This document shows positions 1 through 48,600 of a stretch of 64,000 nt of DNA, piece by piece. Origin of the DNA: Malacoraja senta. Lineage: Eukaryota. The position numbers were made by a program, and so were the translations under genes. Under the pieces are notes generated by a model. That model was not told the origin of the DNA. It did no database searches and saw nothing but the letters and a program-made list of their open reading frames with translations. The stretch lies in NCBI GenBank assembly GCA_038087875.1, contig CM075978.1, positions 177,320,001 to 177,384,000 on the forward strand. The letters run 5' to 3'. Within the stretch, counting starts at the first letter, position 1. Each line of letters opens with the position of its first letter.

Positions 1-1433
1 AGTCTACTTTCCTGTTTTTGCCACCAAAGTGGATAACCTCACATTTATCCACATTATACTGCATCTGCCATGCATTTGCCCACTCACCCATCCTATCCAA
101 GTCATCTTGCAGCCTCCTAGCATCCTCCTCACAGCTAACACTGCCCCCCCAGCTTTGTGTCATCCGCAAACTTGGAGATGTTGCATTCAATTCCCTCGTC
201 CAAATCATTAATATATATTGTAAATAGCTGGGGTCCCAGCACAGAGCCTTGCGGTACCCCACTAGTCACTGCCTGCCATTCTGAAAAGGACCCGTTTACT
301 CCTACTCTTTGCTTCCTGTTTGCCAGCCAGTTCTCTATCCACATCAATACTGAACCCCCAATACCGGGTGCTTTACGTTTGTATACTAATCTCTTATGTG
401 GGACCTTGTCGAAAGCCTTCTGAAAGTCCAGATATAACACATCCACTGGTTCTCCCTTATCCACTCTACTAGTTACATCCTCGAAAAATTCTATAAGATT
501 CGTCAGACATGATTTACCTTTCATAAATCCATGCTGACTTTGTCCAATGATTTCACCACTTTCCAAATGTGCTGCTAACCCATCTTTAATAACTGACTAG
601 CAGTTTCCCCACTACCGATGTTAGACTAACTGGTCTGTAATTCCCCGATTTCTCTCTCCCTCCCTTTTTAAAAAGTGGGGTTACATTAGCTACCCTCCAA
701 TCCTCAGGAACTACTCCAGAATCTAAAGAGTTTTGAAAAATTATCACTAATGCATCCACTATTTCTGGGGCTACTTCCTTAAGTATTCTGGGATGCAGCC
801 TATCTGGCCCTGGGGATTTATCGGCCTTTAATCCATTCAATTTACCTAACACCACTTCCCGGCTAACCTGGATTTCACTCAGTTCCTCCATCTCATTTGA
901 CCCCCGGTCCCCTGCTATTTCCGGCAGATTAATTAAGTCTTCCTTAGTGAAGACAGAACCAAAGTAGTTATTCAATTGGTCTGCCATGTCCTTGTTCCCC
1001 ATGATCAATTCACCTGTTTCTGACTGCAAGGGACCTACATTTGTTTTAACTAATCTTTTTCTCTTCACATATCTATAAAAACTTTTACAGTCAGTTTTTA
1101 TGTTCCCTGCCAGTTTTCTTTCATAATCTATTTCGCCTTTCCTAATTAAACCCTTTGTCCTCCTCTGCTGGACTCTGAATTTCTCCCAGTCCTCTGGTAG
1201 GCTGTTTTTTCTGGCTAATTTGTATGCTTCATCTTTTGTTTTGATACTATCCCTGATTTCCCTTGTTATCCACGGATGCACTACCTTCCCTGATTTATTC
1301 TTTTGCCAAACTGGGATGAACAATTGTTGTAGTTCATCCATGCAGCCTTTAAATGCCTACCATTGCATATCCACCGTCAACCCTTTAAGAATCAATTGCC
1401 AGTCTATCTTGGCCAATTCACGTCTCATACCCT
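1..1433 (-). mobile_element. CR1-clade LINE ORF2 fragment (5'-truncated, frameshifted), apparently inserted in the Gypsy gag
   Basis: ORFs 135..566 and 586..1341: [58 protein letters not shown]. Confidence 0.92.
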
Positions 1434-3313: not shown

Positions 3314-5469
3314 GACTGTGCGTTGACATGAGGAGAGCTAACGAGGCAATAATCAGAGAAAGACACCCAATTCCTACGATTGATGAGGTGCTACAAGTAT
3401 TATCAACCAGTAATGTGTTTCCAAAATTGATCTCAAGTGGGATTATCATCAGTTGGAATTACAACCAGAGTCAAGAGAGGTGACAACATTTGTCACTCAC
3501 TGCGGATTTAACCGATACAAAAGACTGATGTTTCGAATCAATGCTGCTCCCGAGATCTATCAATACGAAATCCACAGAGTGATTGAAGGTGTACCTGGAG
3601 TAGCAAACATATCAGATGACATCATCGTCCATGCATCAATTCGTGAAGAGCATGACAGGAGGTTGAAGCTAGTGTTGACTAAACTTCAAGAAGCAGGTCT
3701 CACTGTGAATGAAGACAAGTGCAAGTTTGGCATCTCTGAGATGGATTTCATGGGACACAGACTCACAAGTGAAGGGCTGAACCCAGCCAAAGCTAAAGTG
3801 AAAGCTGTTGCAGATGCACATGAACCTCAGAATGCAATCGAATGAGGAGTTTTCTAAGACTGGTCAATTATTGTGCAAAATTTATTCCAAATTTTGCTAC
3901 AATGGCAGATCCGCTGAGAAAGTTGACCAGGAAAGACGTACCGTTCCAGTTTGGTAGTGAACAGAGACAGGCATTCAAATCACTGAAACAGAGTCTAATG
4001 AGTGCAGAAACCCTTAGATATTATGATCCAGCTGCATCAATAAAAGCCATAGCAGATGCTAGTCCGGTCAGCTTAGGAGCAGTGCTGGTACGGACACATG
4101 CAGATGGACCCAGAATCATAGCATATGCCAGTCGATCGTTAACCAGCGTGGAGAGAAGGTATTCTCAAAGAGAAAGAAGCACTGGGACTAGTGTGGGCCT
4201 GTGAAAGGTTCCATGCATACTTGTACGGCATTCAATTTGAACTTGTTACAGATCACAAGCCGCTGGAAGTGATCTATTCGACAAGGTCTAAGCCACGTGC
4301 CAGAATAGAACGTTGGGTGCTGAGACTCCAACAGTACAAGTACAAAGTAGTCCACATTGGGAAAGCAAACATCACGGACCCGCTGTCGAGACGGTTGAAG
4401 GATGAACAGCTGGAAGCAACATCCACGCTAGAGATGGAAGCGGAGAACTTTGTGCGCTTTGTCGCAATTCAGTCAACGCCAGGAGCCGTGACAACGAAGG
4501 AAGTTGAAAGGGAATCAGAACATCATCCTGAACTCAAAGATATCAGTGAGCGTATACACAGTGGGCAATGGGATCAATGCCCTTACAAAGCATATGTTCC
4601 CATAAAAGATTAATTTTGTGTAATTGGTCAGTGTGTGCTGAGAGGTAGCAGATTGGTGATCCCGCAGGCACTACGTCCAAGGATCGTGTCATTAGCGCAT
4701 GAAGGACATTTAGGCATCGTCGGTTGTAACAGAATTTGCGGAGCAAAGTGTGGTGGCCAGGTTGTGCGAAAGATGTCGGAAAATTTGTCAAGACATGTCA
4801 CGGATGCCAAATCGCAAGCAGGAGCAACCCACCAGAACCAATTAGAAGTTCAAAGTTGCAACAGGACCATGGGTTGACATAGCTGTCGACTTTCTTGGAT
4901 CACTTCCAACAGGTGAATCAATTATGGTAGTGGTAGACTACTATAGTAGGTACTATGAGTATGCAGTGATCAAGTCAACTACAGCAGAAAAGACTGTACA
5001 GGCATTAGCAGAGATCTTCGCCAGACATGGGTTGCCTGTTACATTACAATGGGCCACAGTTTGTTTCTGAGACATTTGCTGAATACATGAGAATCACAGG
5101 TATCCATCATCACAAGGTAACTCCGAAATGGCCACAAGCTAACGGAGAAGTAGAGAGACAAAACCAGTCCATAGAGAAGAGGATACGAATCACCCATGCC
5201 GAAGGGAAATACTGTTAGCATACGTAGCTGTATATCGGGCGATCACTCACTCAACGACAGGGAAAAATCCAGCAGAAGCTCTGTTTGGAAGGAAAATTCG
5301 CACTAAAATACCAGAAGTGCAAGAGATCATGGAAGACAAGGAGCTGAGAGACTGTGATGCTGAAAAGAAAGGTGCGGCAAAATGGTACGCTGACTTGAAA
5401 CGAGGAGCCAGGTACTCTGAAATAATGCCTGGGGATGATGTGCTTGTGAGGCGAGATGATGGCGGTAAG

Positions 5470-5811
5470 ATAATAATAATAATAATGGATGGGATTTATA
5501 TAGCGCCTTTCTAATACTCAAGGCGCTTTACATCACATTATTCATTCACTCCTCAGTCACACTCGGTGGTGGTGAGCTACTTCTGTAGCCACAGCTTCCC
5601 TGGGGCAGACTGACGGAAGCGTGGCTGCTAATCTGCGCCTACGGCCCCTCCGACCACCACCAATCACTCACACACATTCACACACATTCACACGCAGGCA
5701 AAGGTGGGTGAAGTGTCTTGCCCAAGGACACAACGACAGTATGCACTCCAAGCGGGATTCAAACCGGCTACCTTCCGGTTGCCAGCCGAACACTTAGCCC
5801 ATTGCGCCATC
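5470..5811 (-). mobile_element. tRNA-derived CORE-SINE (AFC-like) with L2-type tail, inserted in the Gypsy pol C-terminus
   Basis: A box TGGCGCAATGG, B box GGTTTGAATCC, CORE GTGTCCTTGGGCAAGACACTTCACCC, tail AAAGGCGCTATATAAAT...(ATT)n. Confidence 0.82.
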
Positions 5812-6180
5812 ACTCCTTACCATGGCCAGCCATACAATGTTGTATCGAGGAGCGGCAGCATGGTGACAGTCAAGTCTCCAGATAGTGTTATCTACAAGAG
5901 AAATGTATCGACCGTCAAAAAGTACATGTCCAGGGACACACAAAATTAGGTGGCCAAAAATTCACCAAGAGCTACTGATTCAGAGGGGCCTGATGACATT
6001 TCCGAGGTGGTGACTAGAGTTCCAGTGGCAGCACGCTGCAACGCAGGTGGTGAGCAGAGAAGGTGTCTGGGTGACAACACTTTGGCAGATTCAACAGGCT
6101 CTAATGCTTCTGTGCCAACTGGTAGACCAAACCGTGAAAGGAGAGTCCCCAAGCGATACGACGATTTTGTGTGATAGATT

Positions 6181-11649: not shown

Positions 11650-11998
11650 CCTAAAAGGATGGATAAGATAGAAAGTCAGAACCTTTTTCACCAGGATGAA
11701 AAAATCAAATACTAGAGGGCATAGCTTTAAGATGCCAGGCGCAAAGTTTAAAGGAGATGTGCAGGGCAAGGCTTTTTTTATGGAGGGTGGTGAGTGCCTG
11801 GAATGTGCTGCTGGGGGTGGTGGTGGAAGCAGGTAAAATAGTGGGTTTTAAGAGACTTTTAGATAGGCATATGGATATGCAGGGTTGGAGGGATATGGAT
11901 TATGTGCAGGTAGATAACAGATGGTCTTGGCTTCATGTTTGGCACAGACATAGTGGGCTGAAGGACCTGTTCCTGTACTGTCCTGTTCCAGGTTCTAT
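11650..11998 (+). mobile_element. CR1 LINE 3' end fragment
   Basis: TRGHSFK / RVVSAWN-like sequence and typical CR1 3' tail. Confidence 0.75.
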
Positions 11999-12034
11999 TA
12001 CGTTGAAGTCAGGCATACCTATATCTAGGAACTT

Positions 12035-12177
12035 CTTCTTCCTCTTGTTGCGTATGGCGTGCACAGCCTAAAGTTGTAGGACAACTTGTTCTATTTGATC
12101 TTATTTGATTGTGCACGCCAGGTTGATTGCATTCGTCGAAACAGGGCGGACCACGTGAAGGTTGCAATCTCCCGCCC
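12035..12177 (-). mobile_element. 143-bp non-autonomous retroposon with ribozyme head and (GAA)n-like tail (RTE-type SINE-like element)
   Basis: 12-bp TSD ATCTAGGAACTT (12023-12034 and 12178-12189); 3' end ...CAAGAGGAAGAAG; no tRNA A/B boxes; 11-bp and 7-bp stems in the 3' half. Confidence 0.8.
12125..12177 (-). ncRNA. Minimal HDV-like (CPEB3-type) self-cleaving ribozyme motif
   Basis: P1 GGGCGG/CCGCCC(U), P2 GAUUGCA/UGCAAUC, P3 ACC/GGU, L3 UUCACGU, P1.1' GU, 5-nt P4 remnant UUCGA, J4/2 CGAA. Confidence 0.8.
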
Positions 12178-12789
12178 ATCTAGGAACTTATAAACTCCTT
12201 CACATTTATCCCTTTTAAACGCAACATTTAACTTTAATTGAATTTGGGCAAATTACTACAGGAAAATAGAAACAGGAATTGCTGGAAATACTCATTAGGA
12301 CAGGTCACATTTGTGGGAAGAGAAACTGAGTTAATGTTTCAGGTAGAAGATCCTTTGTCAGAATTGGGAAAAAGACATTAAAAAAATATAAAAAGAGAAA
12401 GGAAAAGCTGACATGGTATTTTTTTCTCTTTTCCTGCACATTTTTTTTCTTTTCTCTCTCTGAGAGTGGGAGACGTATCCAGCCTGACCTGCCAGGCATA
12501 TCTTTCTGCTTCGCATTTCACAACTACCACATTCTTTTGTCTGTGTTCTCACTCTCTAACTGTTCCGATCACATCATTGACCAGATAACTTTGTTTACAG
12601 TTTATTCCTGTGATCACTGGTATTACCCTGACAGGGACCCCCCCTCCCCCTCCCTGCAGTTTAACAAGATTATTTTGTCTCTTTCCCAGATTTGACAAAG
12701 GTTCTTCGACATTAAATGTTAACTTTGTTTCTCTTCCCTCAGATGCAGCCTGGTTGCTGAGTATTTCCAGCATCTGTAGTTTGCTTTTG

Positions 12790-23942: not shown

Positions 23943-24691
23943 TCACAAGATCCTTGGTGCAGACCTGTCGTTGGTGACGGTCCTCCTGAGCTTAACTCCT
24001 CGGCGGATGGCAGTGAGCATGTCTTCGGGAGACTCGCTAGGAGACAACGGGGGTGGGGGGAGGCCCAGGTCTTCGTCGGAAGCGGGGAGCACCGAGGGAA
24101 ATGGGAACTGTCCTTCACCCAGGGCCTGGGCGCTGGCGACCAGCTCGCCGATCTTCTCCACCAGGCTGTGGCGGTTGGCAGCCAGCTGTTGCTGCTCCTC
24201 ACTCGACAGGTGGCCGCCCGGGTAGACGGAGATCTCCACCGTCCCCCCGCCCCCCCAGGCCGTGTTGGGCAGGCTCAGCCTCTTGGGCGAGGCCTTGGCA
24301 AGATCCAAGGCATTTGGCGAGGTGTCATCGCTGAAGAAGACGCTCTCCTCACTGCCCACCCGCACTGGGACCTGGCCGTCTGGCACGGTGGGCGTCTTCA
24401 CTGGCACGATAGGGGGGCGGATAGGGATGGGGCCCGCGCTGGACAGGGCTCGACGCACTGAGGGCTTGGTGGATGGAGTGCGCCTGATGGTGGCCACTCC
24501 CGGGGTGACCAAGGCGCTCTGCGCAGACCCCGTGGGCAGTCCAGCTGTCGAGGCGGGGCGCTTGGTCTGGAACATTCTCCGGTAGCTCTGTGTGATATCA
24601 CTGTTCCGTGGGATGGTCGAAGATCTGTCAAACTCGCTTTGGTGATCTCCCTCCGCATCGCCATTGACAGAGTAGCAATCGTAATCTGAAA
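23943..24691 (-). CDS. MTSS2: MTSS2 last coding exon (Pro-rich region and C-terminal WH2 domain)
   Basis: Acceptor tcccag|TTTCA; ORF 23943..24737 ending in WH2 motif DMLTAIRRGVKLRRT and TGA stop. Confidence 0.95.
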
Positions 24692-27600
24692 CTGGGAGTA
24701 AAAAGGCACGATTAATGCTTATTAATGCCAATGGCATCAGAGAAAATATTCAATGCAGAAGCTTTCTTTGGAATGCAATGGATAAAACAGAGACCAGAGA
24801 TACAGATTCCTAGGTTGGTCACTTGTTGTAAATGGAATACATGCCAGGCAAGGCTATGCTCATCAAATGCATCAATGAAACATTTGGATAGCTCCCTAAC
24901 ATTGCCATGGTGGTCGCACATCCAAGACACTCTATACAAATATAGCTCTGGAGAGATACTGTATGAAAACAGGCCCTTAGGCCCAATGTGTCTGTGACAA
25001 CCATCAGCCACTCATTTACCCAATCACTACACTGATTGCATTGTTTTTATTCTCCCCACATTCCCGTCAACTCTCCCCAGATTCTACTCCTCATCTACAC
25101 ATAAAGGGCAATTTACAGTAGCCAATTAACTAAACTACCAGTCTGCATGTTCTTGGAATGTGGGAGGAAATCCTTGTGACTTTGAAGTCACACGTGCAAA
25201 CTCCATATTGACAGCACCAGAGGATCAAACTCAAGTTGTTGGTGCTGTGAGGCAGTAGCTCTATTACCTGTGCTGAGTGCCGCACTATAAACAGCCAGAT
25301 CAACAACTCTGCACTATGAGCACAGACCAGAACAAAAACAACTCAATGGATAAGATGTATTTGCCAAGCCAATTTCCTGACATTGAAGTGAAAGTGGCAA
25401 CACAGGGTGGATAGGATGATAAAGGCAACTCAGTGTGTGGTTGCAATTCTCTTGACATTTTATTTACCTGATGAGTGTAGGCTGAGACGCCCTTGTATGC
25501 AATGATGCTCATATCTTACGTAAGCTGGAGTAACCACTAATATATACAGTAACACCACCAGGAACCACTGTGATGATTAGAGCCGCCAGCACCCTTGCTT
25601 AGTTTTGACTGCTGGAACCATTAAAACACTATATCATTGCATCTTCTGAAATCAATTGTTTTATTCGGGGAAATTCACTGATCCTCTTCCTACTGCTCCA
25701 CAGTTAAAGGTTCAATCCCACCAGCTTGCAATTTATGGAAATTTATCTCAAATCCCTCAAGAAGATTTTGTTTTGAAAGTGCTTTCGTTCATTTCTCACA
25801 CTGCACTGGGAACCGTCTACCACACAATCAAAAATGCATCACTGCATCCATTAAATCAACAACAAAATATTGCGGTCACTTACATGACACACTATTAGTG
25901 CATTCATTCCTGCAGCAACACATTAGTTTGCTAACTAAAGCAACATGTGCTCAACAAAGCAATGCACTGATGCGCAAGAGATAATTTCTATTGAGCATAT
26001 TAATGCCGTCAGTTTATTAGCACATTTGTAAATTTACTTGAACAATCATGAATCTGTTAACATCAATGTGATGATAAATTACAATATCCTTGGCATAGTC
26101 ATTACAGTCATTGAGCATTGGGAAAGTTATTAAGCCCACAATGTAATTTGTAATGTAGAGGAGATACTCCAATTCATATTTGGCAAGCTTCAATTTATCT
26201 CCCATAAGCAATGGTAGAAAACGGTAATTTGTCTGAGTCATGTCACATGGAAAGTGAGCAATTAGGTCTCTGTATCTATGGTCTGCAATTGATGCGTAGC
26301 GTGATACTTGTGCAGAAGGTAAACACCTGGAAAGGGAGCACAGAGAGATCTCCTGACGGAAGTACCTTGGGAAGGAATAGTGTCTTCGGAGCAGGAGGGT
26401 GTGGTGGTTTGGGTACTGTAACCACTGGAGTACTGCAGAGAGTCACGGCTGCTCTTCTGGTGTTCCAAGCTCAGGCCCCGGGTCAGCACCATAGCCAGGT
26501 CACTGGCTGCTGTGGATATCTCCTCCCCATGCTGTTAAGGAAATGAGGCACAACAAATAGTCCTTCACTGTTCAATGCAGCAAATTGTACTGTAATATAT
26601 GTTACTTTGCACTGTGACACATTGCTCCTTGTACCATAATATACTGTCCCTTGTACAGTTGGACTATGATATAGTTCACACTATATCGTAATATAATATA
26701 CCTTGTGGTGAAATACTGATTATTGTATTGTGATACATCCCCTGATACAGTAATACATTTACCTTACAGTTTAATATATTGTACCTTAGACTGTTACTTG
26801 TACCATATTATTTGTGCTCTAGTGATATACGGTACTCTGGACTATGACATAGTGCACTTGGTACTGTTACAATTGTATTTTGTACTGTATTGTACTGTAC
26901 CCTGTATAGTAACATACTGTTCCCCATATACCAATAAACTGTACCTTGCGCAGTAATAAACTGCACTGTGTATTGTAATACACCATACCTTGTATGTAAT
27001 ATACTGTACCTTAGCAGCCAACGATGCTGCTGTTACTCGAGACCTCTGCCCATCCTCGACGCTGATCCCCGGATAGACCATTGTTGCCGAGACGGCCTCT
27101 ACTTCGCGGTAGCGTTCAGCTGCCTCCTTGCGTCTCTGTAAAGTGTTCACTACCGGCTGGTCATAGGGACCAGGCTTCGACCAGTCCTAGAAAGTTGAGG
27201 CAAGCGGGCGGTGAATAGAAACATTAGTGTGGGGACTGGGAGTTCAAAGCCCACGGAGAGGAGGGGAATTTCATCTGATTGAGACATTACAGCAAGGCAG
27301 CCAATTAAATACTAAAGTAATTCTGGGTTTGCTTTAAGGTGGCTTATGAAAATAGCTCCAATTAATAGCACCCAATTTTGCACCCATGTCTGCCACCTGT
27401 TCACTCCTTAGTCACTTATCTGCACATTGCCCAGTAAACTGCTTTCTGTAACTAAAACCACTTCAATCCACAAACAGACATCTCTCATTTAGTCCTGTTG
27501 CACAAGGCAGCCCTTTTCCTCCTGCTCTATGCCAACTGCTGGCACTCGTAATCTGACCTACTGCCTGGGATTTAGGACACCTCCCGAACCTTTAGTCACT

Positions 27601-36600: not shown

Positions 36601-39600
36601 AAAAGTGTGGCGTGCAAAAGTATTCAGCCCCCCTGAGTCAATACTTTGTAGAACCACCTTTCGCTGCAATTACAGCTGCAAGTCTTTTGGGGTATGTCTC
36701 TACCAGCTTTGCACATCTAGAGACGGAAATTTTTGCCCATTCTTCTTTGCAAAATAGCTCAAGCTCAGTCAGATTGGATGGAGAGCGTCTGTGAAGAGCA
36801 ATTTTCAAGTCTTGCCAGAGATTCTCAATTGGATTTAGGTCTGGACTTTGACTGGGCCATTCTAACACATGAATATGCTTTGATCTAAACCATTCCATTG
36901 TAGCTTTGGCTGTATGTTTAGGGTCGTTGTCCTGCTGGAAGGTGAACCTCCGCCCCAGTCTCAAGTCTTTAGCAGACTCTAACAGGTTTTCTTCCAAGAT
37001 TGCCCTGTATTTGGCTCCATCCATCTTCCCATCAACTCTGACCAGCTTCCCTGTCCCTGCTGAAGAAAAGCATCCCCACAGCATGATGCTGCCACCACCA
37101 TTTTTCACAGTGGGGATGGTGTGTTCAGGGTGATGTGCAGTGTTAGGTTTCCGCCACACATAGCGTTTTGCATTTAGGCCAAAAACTTCAATTTTGGTCT
37201 CATCTGACCAGAGCACCTTCCTCACATGTTTGCTGTGTCCCCCACATGGCTTGTGGCAAACTGCAAACGGGACTTCTTATGGCTTTTTTTCTACAATGGC
37301 TTTCTTCTTGCCACTCTTCCATAAAGGCCCGATTTGTGGAGTGCACGACTAATAGTTGTCCTGTGGACAGATTCTCCCACCTGAGCTGTGGATCTCTGCA
37401 GCTCCTCCAGAGTTACCATGGGCCTCTTGGCTGCTTCTCTGATCAATGCTCTCCTTGCCCGGCCTGTCAGTTTAGGGGGACGGCCATGTCTTGGTAGGTT
37501 TGCAGTTGTGCCATACTCTTTCCATTTTCGGATGATGGATTGAACAGTGCTCCGTGAGATGTTCAAAGCTTGGGATATTTGTTTATAACCTAACCCTGCT
37601 TTAAACTTCTCCACAACTTTATCCCTGACCTGTCTGGTGTGTTCCTTGGGCTTCATGATGCTGTTTGTTCACTAATGTTCTCTAACAAACCTCTGAGGCC
37701 TTCACAGAACAGCTGTATTTATACTGAGATTAGATTACACACAAGTGGACTCTATTTATTAATTAGGTGACTTCTGAAGGCAATTGGTTGCACTGGATTT
37801 TATTTAGGGGTATCGGAGTAAAGGGGGCTGAATACAAATTTAATTCTTGACAACTGTGAGATGTTGCACTTCGAGATGTCAAACCAGGGTGGGACCTACA
37901 CGGTAAATGGCAGAGCCCTGGATAGTGCTGGAAAATAAGAGATCTGGGAACACCGATGCATGGTTCCATAAAAGAGGCGAGTCAGATAGACAGTGTGGTG
38001 AAGATGGTGCTGGGCACACTTGCTTCATTAGGAAGGATATCTGGTACAAAAGTTGGGACATCATGATGCAGCTGTCCAATTCAGTGGTGGGACCACACTT
38101 AGAGTACTGTGTGCAGTTCCGGTCTCCCTGCTGTTGAAACGATGTCATCAAGTTGGAAAGTGTGCAGAAAAAAATCACCAGAATATTACCTGGGCTTGCA
38201 GGCTTGAGTTATAGGGAGAGGTTGAGATGGCGGGGACTTTTTTCGTTGGAGTGTATGAGGCTGAGGGACGACCTTATTGAGGGTGCAAGATTATGAGGGG
38301 AATAGATAAAATGATTGTTCAGTCTTTTTCTCAGGGTAGAGATTTTCTAAACTGGAGAGCAAAGGCTTAAGGTGACAGGAGAGAGATTTAAGAGGGACTT
38401 AGAAGTGGATTCAATTATGCTTTTAAAAGGCATTTGGAAAGATATATGGACAGGAAGGGTTTAGAGGTCAATAGGTCAAATGCAGACAATCAGAACTAGC
38501 CCAATATGCCAACTTGGTCGGCCTGGACAAGGTGGGTCACAGGGCTTGTTACCTTGCTGTATGGTTCTATGACTAAAAATACCCTGAAGACAATTTGTAG
38601 CATCATACAGACTCAGATCCCTACTAGATCTCTTCCCCTTATCTTACATAATGCTCTCCAGTTCTATCTACCTCAAATTGTCATGTCTACTACTACTAAA
38701 ACATGGCATACTGGAAAATCACAGCCCAGACTGCAGGTACAATATACCACTATTCCTGGCAGGGGATGAGCAGAACAAAATGGTCAGACATTCAGAGCCA
38801 AAAGGCAGGTATAGTGACTGGACAAGCTTTCTGTTCAGGCAACTGCAGCCATGATCAGACATTCTGATGCAGTGTAATACCATGCACCATGCAGAGACGC
38901 AGCAGTGTCAAACAGAACCCGAACCAGGTATCAATCACATGGACTAAGCACTGAGCAAAACTCCCTTTGCACTGTTCAAAAGCTTCTTTGAATGCTATCC
39001 GGGGGTTAAAAAACTGGACCATGATTTGAACGGGATTGAGGTTGTGATTGCTGATCAAGCGGTAAAAGGGCCACATGGTGTGGGGCAGATAAACATCGAG
39101 TACCATCTTGTTCTCTATAACCATTGGTTATTGTTAAATCTACACCAACTAATAGTTCACAGCGTGAATCAGGAGCTGAGCCAGAGGCAATCACATGCTC
39201 GACGTGGAATCACGTTGTGTGGTGATGCCGCATGTACTTGAGATCTGAGCTGTGCCTGAAGCCTAATTTCACCTACTAGTGCATCCTAAATGCATACTCT
39301 CCCCGCACATGCACCTACCCACCCATGCATGCCAGTCAATCATACACCCACGCTGCCATGTGGCCTTTTCCCACCCATGCATGTTTGCATCCACTCACCC
39401 ACCGATGCACCAGTCACCATCCACACATCTATTCACCTGTACATTTAAGCACACACCCACTCATCCTTGGAGGCACACAGCCACACGCACATGCAAGCAC
39501 ACGGCTGCCATACATGCAAGCACACAGCCACCCATCCACTCACCCACCCACCCACGTCACCAGCGGAAGTGTAAGAGAATGTGTATCACTGCCTCTCCTT

Positions 39601-45600: not shown

Positions 45601-48600
45601 GGTAGGACTTTATTCCTTGGAGAGCAGGTGATTAGTGGTGATCTTGTAGAGGTGCATAATATCATGAGGGGATTAGATAGGGTAAATGCACAGTCTTTTA
45701 CTCAGAGTAGGGGAATCAAGGACATGGGTATGAGATGAGGTCGAGAAGATTTAATTGGAACCTAAAGGGCAGCTATTTTTATACAAATGGTGGTGGGTGT
45801 ATGGAACAAGTTGCCAGAGGAGGTAGTGGAGGCAAGTACTATCACAACATTTAAAGGACATTTGGACAAGTACATAGTTAGGATAGGTTTACAAGTATAT
45901 GGGACAAACGCAGGAAGGTGAGATTAGTGTAGATGGGGCATGTTGGTTGGCATGTGCAGGTTGGGCTGAAGGGCCTGTTTCTACACTGCATGGCTATGAA
46001 TATGGGAAGTGGGGGGGGGGGATATGAGGGAATGAATATGGGAGGGGGGGGGGCAGGAGAAAGAGCCTTGGAGTCTATGTGTCCTGGGGTTCAGCAGGGG
46101 CCTGAGACGTCGGGCAGCAGGACAAAGTTATGGAGGCAAAGGATTCCCCCGTAATGGAGGTTTCTGAGACTGCAGTTGGTCAAAAAGGAGACACACATTC
46201 TCTAAGTCGTGGATGACCTTGAGGTACAGGGGCCTCAGAAGGGGTGATTATTCCCACCAAGACCACATGCTCAGGTATCACAGCCACTGGGTTAGAGGAT
46301 GCAGTTCAGAAACCACCTGAGGGGGCAGATTTGGTTATGGGAATGGGTCCCCAGCCTATGCCCCTGTTGAGATTGTGTGCCCAGTTGACTGGTTCCCCTT
46401 TCCTCTCTGCCTGTGTTCGTACAGGTGGTGGTTCTTTGCCTGCACAGATACCTGTACAATGAGCACCCTCCTACATGGGTAGGAAAGAACTGCAGATGCT
46501 GGCTTAAATCGAAGGTAGACACAAAATGCTGGAGTAACTCTGCGGGACAGGCAGCATCTCTGGAGAGAAAGAATGGGTGACGTTTCGGGTCTGAAGAAGG
46601 GTCTCGACCCGAAACATCACCCATTCCTTCTCTCCAGATATGCTGCCTGTCCCGCTGAGTTACTCCAGCATCTTGTGTCTACCCTCCTACACGGCATGTG
46701 TTGGTGATGTATGTTCTCCACCAGGGTCATTGCTTTCTGGTCAATCAGCTCCTGGTCGTGGACATCTGTTGTACTGATAATTGTGATTATAGAATAAAAA
46801 CTAATTTGAAAAAGGTAAAATAAGGCAGGCATAGACAATATTCTTATTTATATGTTTTTGTGGTGATATTTCAATTAAGGTATTATAAAATGAAACAGGG
46901 CTGTGAAGGTTAAAAAAAGAGCAGGGGAAAAAAGCAGGTTAGACTCCACATAGAGTATAGCTCCACATAGGCAGTCCTGATACACCCCAAACACTGGGAC
47001 AGCATGGATGACATACAGAGTAAAGCATCCCAAAACTATCCCATCAAACAAGGCTGGGGCAGCATGGATAAGATACAGAGTAAAGCACCCTGACACTGTC
47101 CCATCAAATAGGGTTGGGAAAGCAGGCTTTAGACAGATTAAACCTCCGTCTACCATATTTCACCCACACTAGGCTGACATTCATACTTACTGCCCAACTA
47201 TAACCTTTCCATGTGAGACACGGACTCAGTTCACCGTCACAGGACAATCTTATCGTAGCACTTGCGCAGACTCTGACTGTACAACGTAACAAGGTGAAGT
47301 CACACATGTAAAAGAGAGAACGCGAGCTGCATCCGTGAGAGAAGAGACTTACCGAGAAGTTCTACAGGGAGGGGAGGAAAGGAGGAAAGGAAGATGGTCA
47401 GTGGAGGTAGTGGGAGAAGCAGTATTAGTGACCGAGGACAATTTATTACGGAAGAGGGCGTGTGCAGACAAAGTGGCACAACTGACTGAGTATCGGCACC
47501 TGTAAACACCTCACTTCTAACGCCACAGCTGAGGGTAATCTTGTTGGAGTTATTTCACCATCGTTGGTCATCTGTCCATCTGATATCCAGACCCCGGCAA
47601 ACAAGTCAAGGACGTCACCCGAATAGAGAGCAGCCCCCAGCACTCAGGGAGGTGCAGTGCCCTAGGTACTGCCTAGTGTCTAGAGAGGGGCAGTGCTCCG
47701 GGTAATGCCCTGTGTCCAGAGATGGGTAGTGGTCTGCATAATGCCCATGGCCGTGAGAGGGGCAGTGGTCTGGGTTATACCCACGATCCAGAAAGGGGTA
47801 CTGGGTAATGTCCCAGTGTCGAAAAAGGGGCCGTGTCCTTAATGCCCAGTGTCCAGAGAGGGGCAGGGCCTGCTACTGACCAGCAGTGAGAACAGCAGTG
47901 TCCTGGATAATGTTCAGTGCCCAGAGTAGGGCAGTGGTCTGGGTTCTGACCAGTTCAGGGAAGAATGATACCCTGGGTAATGACCAAAGGGCTGAGAATT
48001 TGTTGTTTGAAGTCTCACAGGAACATCGGTAGGTCCAGATTTATGAGGTTTATACACTGATAAACTCTCATGCACTTACAGCACTGTTGAGGCAGGTCAG
48101 TGCAAACTCAAACCCATAAACAGATCCACTCACCTTTCCGTGCTTTCTTCTGAAGTTTGAGAGTGTCAGATGATTTCTTCTTAATCTCATGTCGAGCTCT
48201 CTTATACTCTGAAGTTAAAAAGCAATGTTTAAATGTGGGTTGGGAAATCAGTGCTATTTAAGTAATGACAGTTCCAGCAAGTGTTGCATGCAGCAATGTC
48301 GGAAATCTTTCCCTTCTAACCGCCATCCCAAACTACTGGGACTCCAAACACTGGAAATGGGGGAGGTTTCAATCCATTGGGATTCCATAAACTGGGAATG
48401 GGGTAAGATTTCAGTTCATTGGTATTCGATAGATTGGAATGTGATAGGTTTAAGTCCATTGGGATTCAACAGACCGGGAATAGAGGCGATTCAATCCATT
48501 GTAATTCAATAGAGAAAGGAAGAGGAGAGATTAAAATCCAATGGGATTCTATAAACCAGGAACAGGGGTGGTTTCAATCCATTGAGTCCTTTTACACTGG

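Follow-up and report, generated by a model that had tools for sequence, protein, structure and literature searches.

A candidate minimal ribozyme of the hepatitis delta virus type at the 5' end of a short, abundant retroposon in the skate Malacoraja senta

Introduction

Ribozymes of the hepatitis delta virus (HDV) type are known in very compact forms, namely the theta ribozymes, which cleave in vitro, and the minimal drz, which came originally from metagenomes (Kienbeck et al. 2024, PMC10879173). About 99% of these ribozymes were reported to lie in phages (Caudoviricetes), the eukaryotic genomes searched being those of human, mouse, and protists (PMC10879173). Larger HDV-like ribozymes head mobile elements: in trypanosomes, L1Tc and ingi have the short non-coding partners NARTc and RIME (PMC3185411, PMC3383444, PMC4035085), and the first 77 nt of L1Tc act as both promoter and ribozyme (PMC3383444). 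Bipartite derivatives of long interspersed nuclear elements (LINEs) that carry no open reading frame (ORF) have been described from RTE, Ingi, Vingi, and R2, their LINE 5' end being kept possibly for its 5' ribozyme (Kojima 2018, PMC5786205), and the R2 SIDEs owe their precise 5' end to a 5' ribozyme acting on a co-transcript (PMC3414825). The present study concerns a 143-bp insert in a 64,000-nt stretch of the genome of the skate Malacoraja senta (GenBank assembly GCA_038087875.1, contig CM075978.1, positions 177,320,001 to 177,384,000), hereafter the window, which an earlier note made from the letters alone had read as a retroposon with a minimal ribozyme in place of a tRNA head.

The insert belongs to a tailed, multi-copy retroposon family whose copies have no RNA polymerase III (Pol III) head and whose 5' end matches, to the base, the predicted cleavage site of a putative HDV-type ribozyme; the copy in the window is flanked by target-site duplications (TSDs). 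We consider it likely that the insert is a young copy of a very abundant, non-autonomous retroposon of the kind without long terminal repeats (LTRs), shared by this cartilaginous fish with its relatives, headed by a minimal HDV-type ribozyme that would cleave its own 5' end and copied by a LINE.

Methods

Candidate HDV-type folds were sought with a descriptor of our own that specified 6 of 7 pairs in P1, a P3 of 3 bp, an L3 of 6-8 nt, the motif C-N-R-A, and a P2 of at least 5 bp. Viral contigs and prokaryotic genomes were scanned with the pattern ACCTTCACGTGGT-N6-TGT. Pairs in the minimal ribozymes so assembled were counted by our own structural parse, MAFFT having shifted the P1 and P2 columns, and a covariance model was avoided because one derived from sequences that the skate core itself had retrieved would be circular.

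Results

The insert (12035-12177, minus strand) is enclosed by two perfect 12-bp TSDs reading ATCTAGGAACTT on the plus strand, one at 12023-12034 beside the 3' tail of the element and one at 12178-12189 beside its 5' end; the whole arrangement is as the earlier note had given it when both duplications and the insert are re-read. The element ends in a short AAG-type tail, AGGAAGAAG (12035-12043, minus strand), whose length and sequence differ between copies. In target-primed reverse transcription, a nicked target anneals to the tail of the RNA and primes its copying, and the TSD beside the tail starts in the RNA sense with AAG, the unit of the tail itself, which fits priming of this kind. ARAGORN found no tRNA in the element or upstream of it, and a B box search allowing up to one mismatch gave nothing inside it, in agreement with the earlier claim that Pol III boxes are lacking. 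With neither a tRNA, 5S, or 7SL head nor A and B boxes, the element is not a classical Pol III short interspersed nuclear element (SINE).

At least 13 organisms carry 0.6-0.93 of the sampled words of the element in their DNA and RNA runs. Contigs numbering 4,756, 22,395, and 1,280 in three of the runs map to 12035-12177 only and leave the unique flanks almost uncovered, and a fourth, small RNA run placed only 4 contigs on the element. The 5' boundary is sharp, with 450, 110, 68, and 33 contigs in four species departing from the reference at 12177, and beyond the first base of the family (G1) the flank is AT-rich and unrelated (agreement 0.35-0.46). Copies that ran on into a tRNA or 5S head, which the earlier note had named as one of the observations that would count against its reading, were not seen. 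The 3' boundary, by comparison, is ragged from 12035 to 12043, as expected of a variable microsatellite-type tail. Together with the duplication, the variable tail and the thousands of contigs with unrelated flanks mark the element as a retroposon.

Every boundary class listed, in all five runs, reads CCCC on the plus strand, equal to GGGG-CGG in the RNA sense, a reading that includes classes clipped a few bases earlier by a nearby mismatch. The family consensus thus has G1, which with the closing U of P1' makes the G1·U wobble at the cleavage site, as the earlier note had guessed of the family when cautioning that the base is changed in this copy. Position 12178 here is U in the RNA sense where the family has G1, so that the cleavage-site pair would be U·U. 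The proposal that the insert begins at the cleavage site accordingly holds for the family, whose boundary falls at G1, but not to the base for the window copy, which starts one nucleotide inside the predicted product. The G was lost either through a 5' truncation of one base or afterwards from within the run of Gs, and the window copy is probably a poor or dead ribozyme. In all runs, each boundary class has a consensus U (RNA sense) just 5' of G1, which could reflect a target preference or an untemplated A added at the end of the complementary DNA. A variant of the family with a tandem head was also observed: in the RNA run X16, a high-depth contig over 12111-12177 joins the ribozyme and a 14-nt linker straight to G1 and a full element.

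The first 53 nt of the insert (54 nt with the family's G1) can be read as a P4-less HDV-type fold occupying 12125-12177 on the minus strand. Followed in the RNA sense from 12177 down to 12125, it comprises the 5' strand of P1, GGGCGG (12172-12177; GGGGCGG in the family version); J1/2, GA (12170-12171), just 5' of P2; the 5' strand of P2, GAUUGCA (12163-12169); P3, ACC (12160-12162), with the loop L3, UUCACGU (12153-12159), and P3', GGU (12150-12152); the 3' strand of P1, CCGCCCU (12143-12149), whose last U is the wobble partner of G1; J1/4, GU (12141-12142), the partner in P1.1; a 5-nt linker, UUCGA (12136-12140), in place of P4; J4/2, CGAA (12132-12135); and the 3' strand of P2, UGCAAUC (12125-12131), which closes the outer pseudoknot. 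These segments have the nested double pseudoknot of HDV ribozymes, with 6 Watson-Crick pairs in P1 (7 pairs with the family G1), 7 of 7 in P2, 3 of 3 in P3, and one C-G pair in P1.1. CGAA at 12135-12132 has the form C-N-R-A, the candidate catalytic C (12135) being the first base of J4/2, the free N lying at 12134, and P2' following directly. L3 is identical to the CPEB3 consensus, and the segment from P3 to P3' follows the form ACC-U-yC-ACGU-GGU of the theta lists. All of these helices, the catalytic-position C, and the reduced P4 had been set out in the earlier note and were found on re-reading. The sequence supports a complete minimal fold of the HDV/CPEB3 type in the head.

RNAfold places P1 and P3 in the minimum-energy nested fold of the head, and the head's z-score is flat because the pseudoknotted P2 cannot be scored in that program. 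The 3' domain (12055-12120, minus strand) is an 11-bp stem (12110-12120 with 12055-12065) around a 7-bp hairpin (12071-12087, loop 12078-12080); RNAfold recovered this structure, as previously proposed, in the 3' 90 nt at -23.9 kcal/mol (z = -3.56, none of 200 shuffles being as good). This domain is presumed to be the recognition module for the partner reverse transcriptase.

How readily such a head might arise by chance depends on how strictly the fold is defined. The loose descriptor matched the window at 2 sites, where dinucleotide shuffles average 3.6, and that form of it therefore carries no meaning; when the fold must be compact, with a P2 of 7 bp or more, a shuffled window yields 0.025 matches, and once the 16 core bases are given, about 0.04% of shuffled flanks supply the rest of the fold. 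The second descriptor match, at 46631 on the minus strand, was suspected to be a ribozyme or hammerhead and was rejected as part of a long, near-perfect hairpin repeat (46530-46690), for which Rfam gives only weak matches to hairpins resembling microRNAs.

Copies of the family differ most at 12078, a base of the hairpin loop, and are also frequently variant at 12120, in the closing pair of the outer 3' stem. Within the head, the free N of C-N-R-A (12134) is G, U, or A among copies, as the motif permits, and the change from G to U, present in about 28-45% of depth, gives CUAA as in the phage ribozymes. In P1, the C at 12174, part of a CpG, is U in the RNA sense in about 28-32% of boundary contigs, and at its pairing partner, 12147, A replaces G in 15-21% of depth, two measures that are not strictly comparable, one counting contigs and the other depth; other plus-strand G>A changes at CpG sites reach 2-6.5%, and the adjacent pair 12173/12148 has matched, lower shares. 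The frequencies at 12174/12147 would fit a pathway from C-G through U·G to U-A. Plus-strand C>T at 12137 is likewise high, which weakens the reading of P1 as co-varying.

The same core recurs outside the vertebrates. Among viral contigs, 118 core matches were found; the entire fold is completed in 49 of them, where shuffled flanks would give 0.05, and among prokaryotic genomes in 3 of 120 matches. P4 is missing from 19 of these 52 complete folds, which are 54-60 nt long with L3 and J1/4 as in the skate head, and 16 of the 19 start where a tRNA, or once a transfer-messenger RNA (tmRNA), has its 3' end; the 3' end of a tRNA is the defining context of theta ribozymes. Placement next to a tRNA, L3 UUCACGU, and J1/4 GU with its single-pair P1.1 were observed in the phage or prokaryotic loci L101, L111, L096, L108, L182, L070, L072, L024, L032, L060, L073, L205, L106, L097, and L047. 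TTCACGT does not occur in the published theta lists examined, so that the tRNA-adjacent variant with UUCACGU and GU seems to fall outside the published final theta motif. In the phage locus L067, a minimal HDV-type ribozyme (5962-6018) directly follows a predicted tmRNA gene (5516-5961), which suggests that ribozymes may trim the 3' ends of tmRNA, beyond those of tRNAs.

Across 22 minimal examples, between three and five pair types occur at each of P1 positions 2-7 and at each position of P2, which illustrates covariation without proving it, the sets having been chosen for pairing. The cleavage-site pair is G-U in 19 of the 22, and the window copy is the only one with neither G·U nor A·U there.

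A metagenome scan with the 21-nt core returned seven matches at six loci. Two of these, L004 (854-908, minus strand) and L006 (598-652, plus strand), are AT-rich eukaryotic JACSEG01 contigs with the same P4-less layout (P1 GGGGUGG/CCACCCU, P2 GAUGACA/UGUCAUC), and differ from the skate head at one pair of P1 and two of P2, each time with compensation; the ribozyme lies there within a longer repeat whose upstream part is also conserved, and so does not stand at a retroposon 5' end. L002 and L005, which look circular or tandem, have the same core with P1 GGGGUAG/CUACCCU, an unrelated but paired P2, and a real P4. L002 (1-1387 of Ga0316031_100790) has identical 15 bases at both ends and is thus probably a circle or tandem unit of about 1.37 kb; with CPEB3-like HDV-type matches on both strands (252-337, plus; 726-804, minus; 15 bits each, below threshold), it resembles a circular RNA of the delta or viroid kind. 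L005 has a 1187-nt repeat unit with a full-size HDV-type ribozyme at 41-119 and 1228-1306 (plus strand) and a type III hammerhead at 680-737 (minus strand; RF00008, 40.1 bits, E = 2.5e-6, slightly below the gathering score), and on these matches is read as a viroid-like element with different putative ribozymes in its two polarities. The matches in L001 and L003, GC-rich bacterial DNA, were rejected as chance core matches with neither P1 nor P2.

Elsewhere in the window, the element lies on the same strand as an MTSS2 exon encoding a WH2 domain (23943-24737), about 12 kb downstream of it, and read-through from that gene would therefore be sense. None of the RNA contigs mapped to the locus covers its unique flanks. 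Two further high-copy repeats flank the insertion site at 11930-11990 and 12260-12320, the first represented by thousands of contigs with consistent mismatches to the window copy at 11932 and 11952. Four pieces of other mobile elements were recognised, none of which shares sequence with the insert: a LINE reverse transcriptase fragment (RVT_1; 135-1341, minus strand), an LTR-type reverse transcriptase-RNase H piece (4191-4613, plus strand), a Tc1-like DDE_3 transposase (36638-37225, minus strand), and a LINE-type ORF matching PF09004 (55609-56313, plus strand). A spurious 56-aa ORF running through the element retrieved no candidate copies when used as a query against the protein collection, and looking up the exact protein encoded by the LINE ORF of the window likewise returned no record.

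Discussion

The family RNA would consist of a 54-nt, P4-less HDV-type ribozyme at its extreme 5' end, the stem-and-hairpin 3' domain, and the short AAG-type tail, and the element, presumably made of a LINE 5' end and a LINE 3' end, fits the description of a bipartite LINE derivative better than that of a classical SINE. Having no promoter, it would be transcribed within longer host transcripts. The ribozyme would then cut just 5' of G1 and release an RNA that begins at the element's own first base, with the double pseudoknot as its 5' end; cleavage at this point is what we infer from the fold, from the family boundary at G1, and from the activity of theta ribozymes in vitro, which indicates that RNA of this architecture is a working ribozyme (PMC10879173). 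A LINE reverse transcriptase would recognise the 3' domain and tail and copy the RNA into a nicked target whose AAG pairs with the tail, leaving the 12-bp duplication.

Several observations weigh against this explanation. P1.1 is a single Watson-Crick pair only. Comparison with the Rfam HDV and CPEB3 models, as suggested earlier, gave nothing above threshold: the best match of the head, RF02682 (HDV-F-prausnitzii), covers the full model in the correct register, but scores 14.5 bits against a threshold of 44 (E = 3.5 on 421 bases), and the RF00622 model has no match to the head at E ≤10; such scores are low because the models cannot hold the pseudoknot and penalise the missing P4. No Rfam family reached its gathering score anywhere in the 64-kb window. 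The partner LINE was found neither in the window, where blastn with the element returned no second copy and no LINE sharing its tail, nor in the scanned collections, and the tail pattern was absent from the viral and prokaryotic ones; the RTE-type partner proposed in the earlier note is not supported by these searches. RNA contigs crossing the 5' boundary are not visibly depleted (49 of 1,280 versus about 2% in DNA runs), contigs being a poor measure of the depletion of read-through. The linkage of 12174 with 12147 is deduced from matching frequencies and not from single sequences. Finally, the catalytic C at 12135 is changed in 1.7-4.2% of depth, similar to other CpG sites, which is the rate expected of neutrally decaying dead copies; it gives no sign of selection and is silent on the source genes.

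The fold might also have been kept for a main job other than cleavage, as an internal promoter, a protective or translation-initiating 5' structure, or a recognition module, the RNA's 5' end being set by transcription initiation. A fixed transcription start would produce the sharp common 5' end equally well, the head of L1Tc is a precedent for a ribozyme that is also a promoter (PMC3383444), an AUG is present in J4/2-P2' (CGAAUGCAAUC), and RNA contigs that cross the boundary do occur. We nevertheless regard such a role as unlikely, given that the boundary is the predicted cleavage site to the base with every position of the catalytic core intact, that there are no Pol III boxes, and that phage ribozymes built in this way cleave in vitro (PMC10879173); under a promoter role, moreover, the kept C-N-R-A junction and the G1-U pair would stay unexplained.

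Much less probable is a scheme in which the ribozyme is active and the element has spread as a passenger of composite units, such as the tandem-head dimers, or through circular RNA in the manner of retrozymes. The joint in X16 would suit the former, and the recurrence of the core in circular- or tandem-looking contigs of about 1.2-1.4 kb, with ribozymes on both strands, would suit the latter; the window copy and the bulk of the contigs are, however, monomers with unrelated flanks on both sides, and the 12-bp duplication and microsatellite-type tail are marks of target-primed reverse transcription. To our knowledge, HDV-type ribozymes do not ligate. That an ordinary SINE or LINE fragment fell by chance into a ribozyme-like fold, to which the sub-threshold Rfam score and the roughly 3.6 loose matches per shuffled window (and the hairpin repeat at 46631) lend some colour, is close to refuted by the rarity of the compact form and of chance completion around the core, by the identity of that core to CPEB3, and by a fold kept across thousands of copies with G1 in their consensus.

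If the preferred explanation, a self-cleaving and LINE-copied retroposon, is true, the family would bring the smallest natural ribozymes of the HDV type into a vertebrate genome, with copies in the tens of thousands, and would give minimal ribozymes, hitherto described almost exclusively in gut phages and without a settled origin, a second natural job at the 5' end of a promoter-less retroposon. The family would also offer a large natural set of mutational data for the minimal fold, a concrete candidate source for the core of the CPEB3 ribozyme, and, as a compact processing module beside a LINE recognition module, some practical interest for RNA templates based on retrotransposons. A broader proposal, that minimal ribozymes of the theta type are the standard 5'-end module of a large vertebrate lineage of retroposons and LINEs and that CPEB3 is a domesticated head that later gained P4, is speculative and rather doubtful at present. 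Only under that proposal would the presence of one core in phage tRNA clusters, circular viroid-like RNAs, and fish retroposons suggest that a single ribozyme lineage had spread horizontally more than once or was of very deep ancestry.

Comparison with known systems

The closest architecture is that of the theta ribozymes and minimal drz, parsed in the supplement of PMC10879173 as a P1 of 7, a junction of 2, a P2 of 7, ACC, U, CC, ACGU, GGU, a P1' of 7, GG, 6 nt, CUAA, and a P2' of 7. The skate head shares with these a P1 of 7, a J1/2 of 1-2 nt, a P2 of 7, the P3 strands ACC/GGU, a 7-nt L3 of the form U-yC-ACGU, a 2-nt J1/4, a linker of 5-6 nt for P4, a J4/2 of the form C-N-A-A, and a P2' of 7, with a total length of 54-57 nt. 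It differs in standing at the 5' end of a vertebrate retroposon with no tRNA upstream, whereas theta ribozymes process the 3' ends of phage tRNAs, and in its P1.1, which is UC/GU with one Watson-Crick pair in the skate and CC/GG in the published theta lists consulted. A strict theta ribozyme, whose cleavage site lies no more than 5 nt from a phage tRNA's 3' end and which has a CC/GG P1.1, is thus a different thing.

The likeness to CPEB3 (RF00622), claimed for the core in the earlier note, extends to all 14 unpaired positions (L3, the U37 that closes P1, J1/4 GU, and J4/2 CGAA) of the Rfam consensus, GGGGGCC-A-caGCAGAA-GCG-UUCACGU-CGC-GGCCCC-U-GU-(P4)-CGAA-UUCUGCU, and P1.1 is a single pair in both. 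CPEB3 has a P4 helix, the P3 strands GCG/CGC, and a single-copy intronic setting, in contrast to the skate head, which has no P4 and is multi-copy and mobile; lacking P4, a passing model score, and a place in a single-copy CPEB3 intron, the head is not a CPEB3 ribozyme.

In the design of the whole element, compared by design alone, NARTc and RIME are alike in keeping the first ~77 nt of the LINE (an HDV-like ribozyme) together with the LINE 3' end and in being mobilised in trans, and unlike in belonging to protists, not vertebrates, and in having a larger ribozyme that doubles as a promoter (Pr77). The R2 SIDEs and the derivatives of RTE, Vingi, and R2 similarly join a LINE 5' end to a 3' end, the coding region having been lost. 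Vingi, of which Ingi is the sister clade, has no 5' ribozyme listed for it in PMC5786205. The R2 SIDEs are specific to ribosomal DNA and have full-size ribozymes, whereas the skate family, whose members measure only ~140 nt, is dispersed and much more abundant. A full-text search of an incomplete literature library returned neither the core motif nor such an element in cartilaginous fish. The novelty implied by the earlier note is therefore partial, since the non-autonomous LINE derivative headed by a ribozyme is already a known design (NARTc, R2 SIDEs, and RTE and Vingi derivatives; PMC5786205, PMC3414825, PMC3185411); what sets the skate element apart from these is the minimal, phage-like, P4-less form of its predicted ribozyme and its occurrence in a vertebrate family of ~140-nt elements with thousands to tens of thousands of copies.

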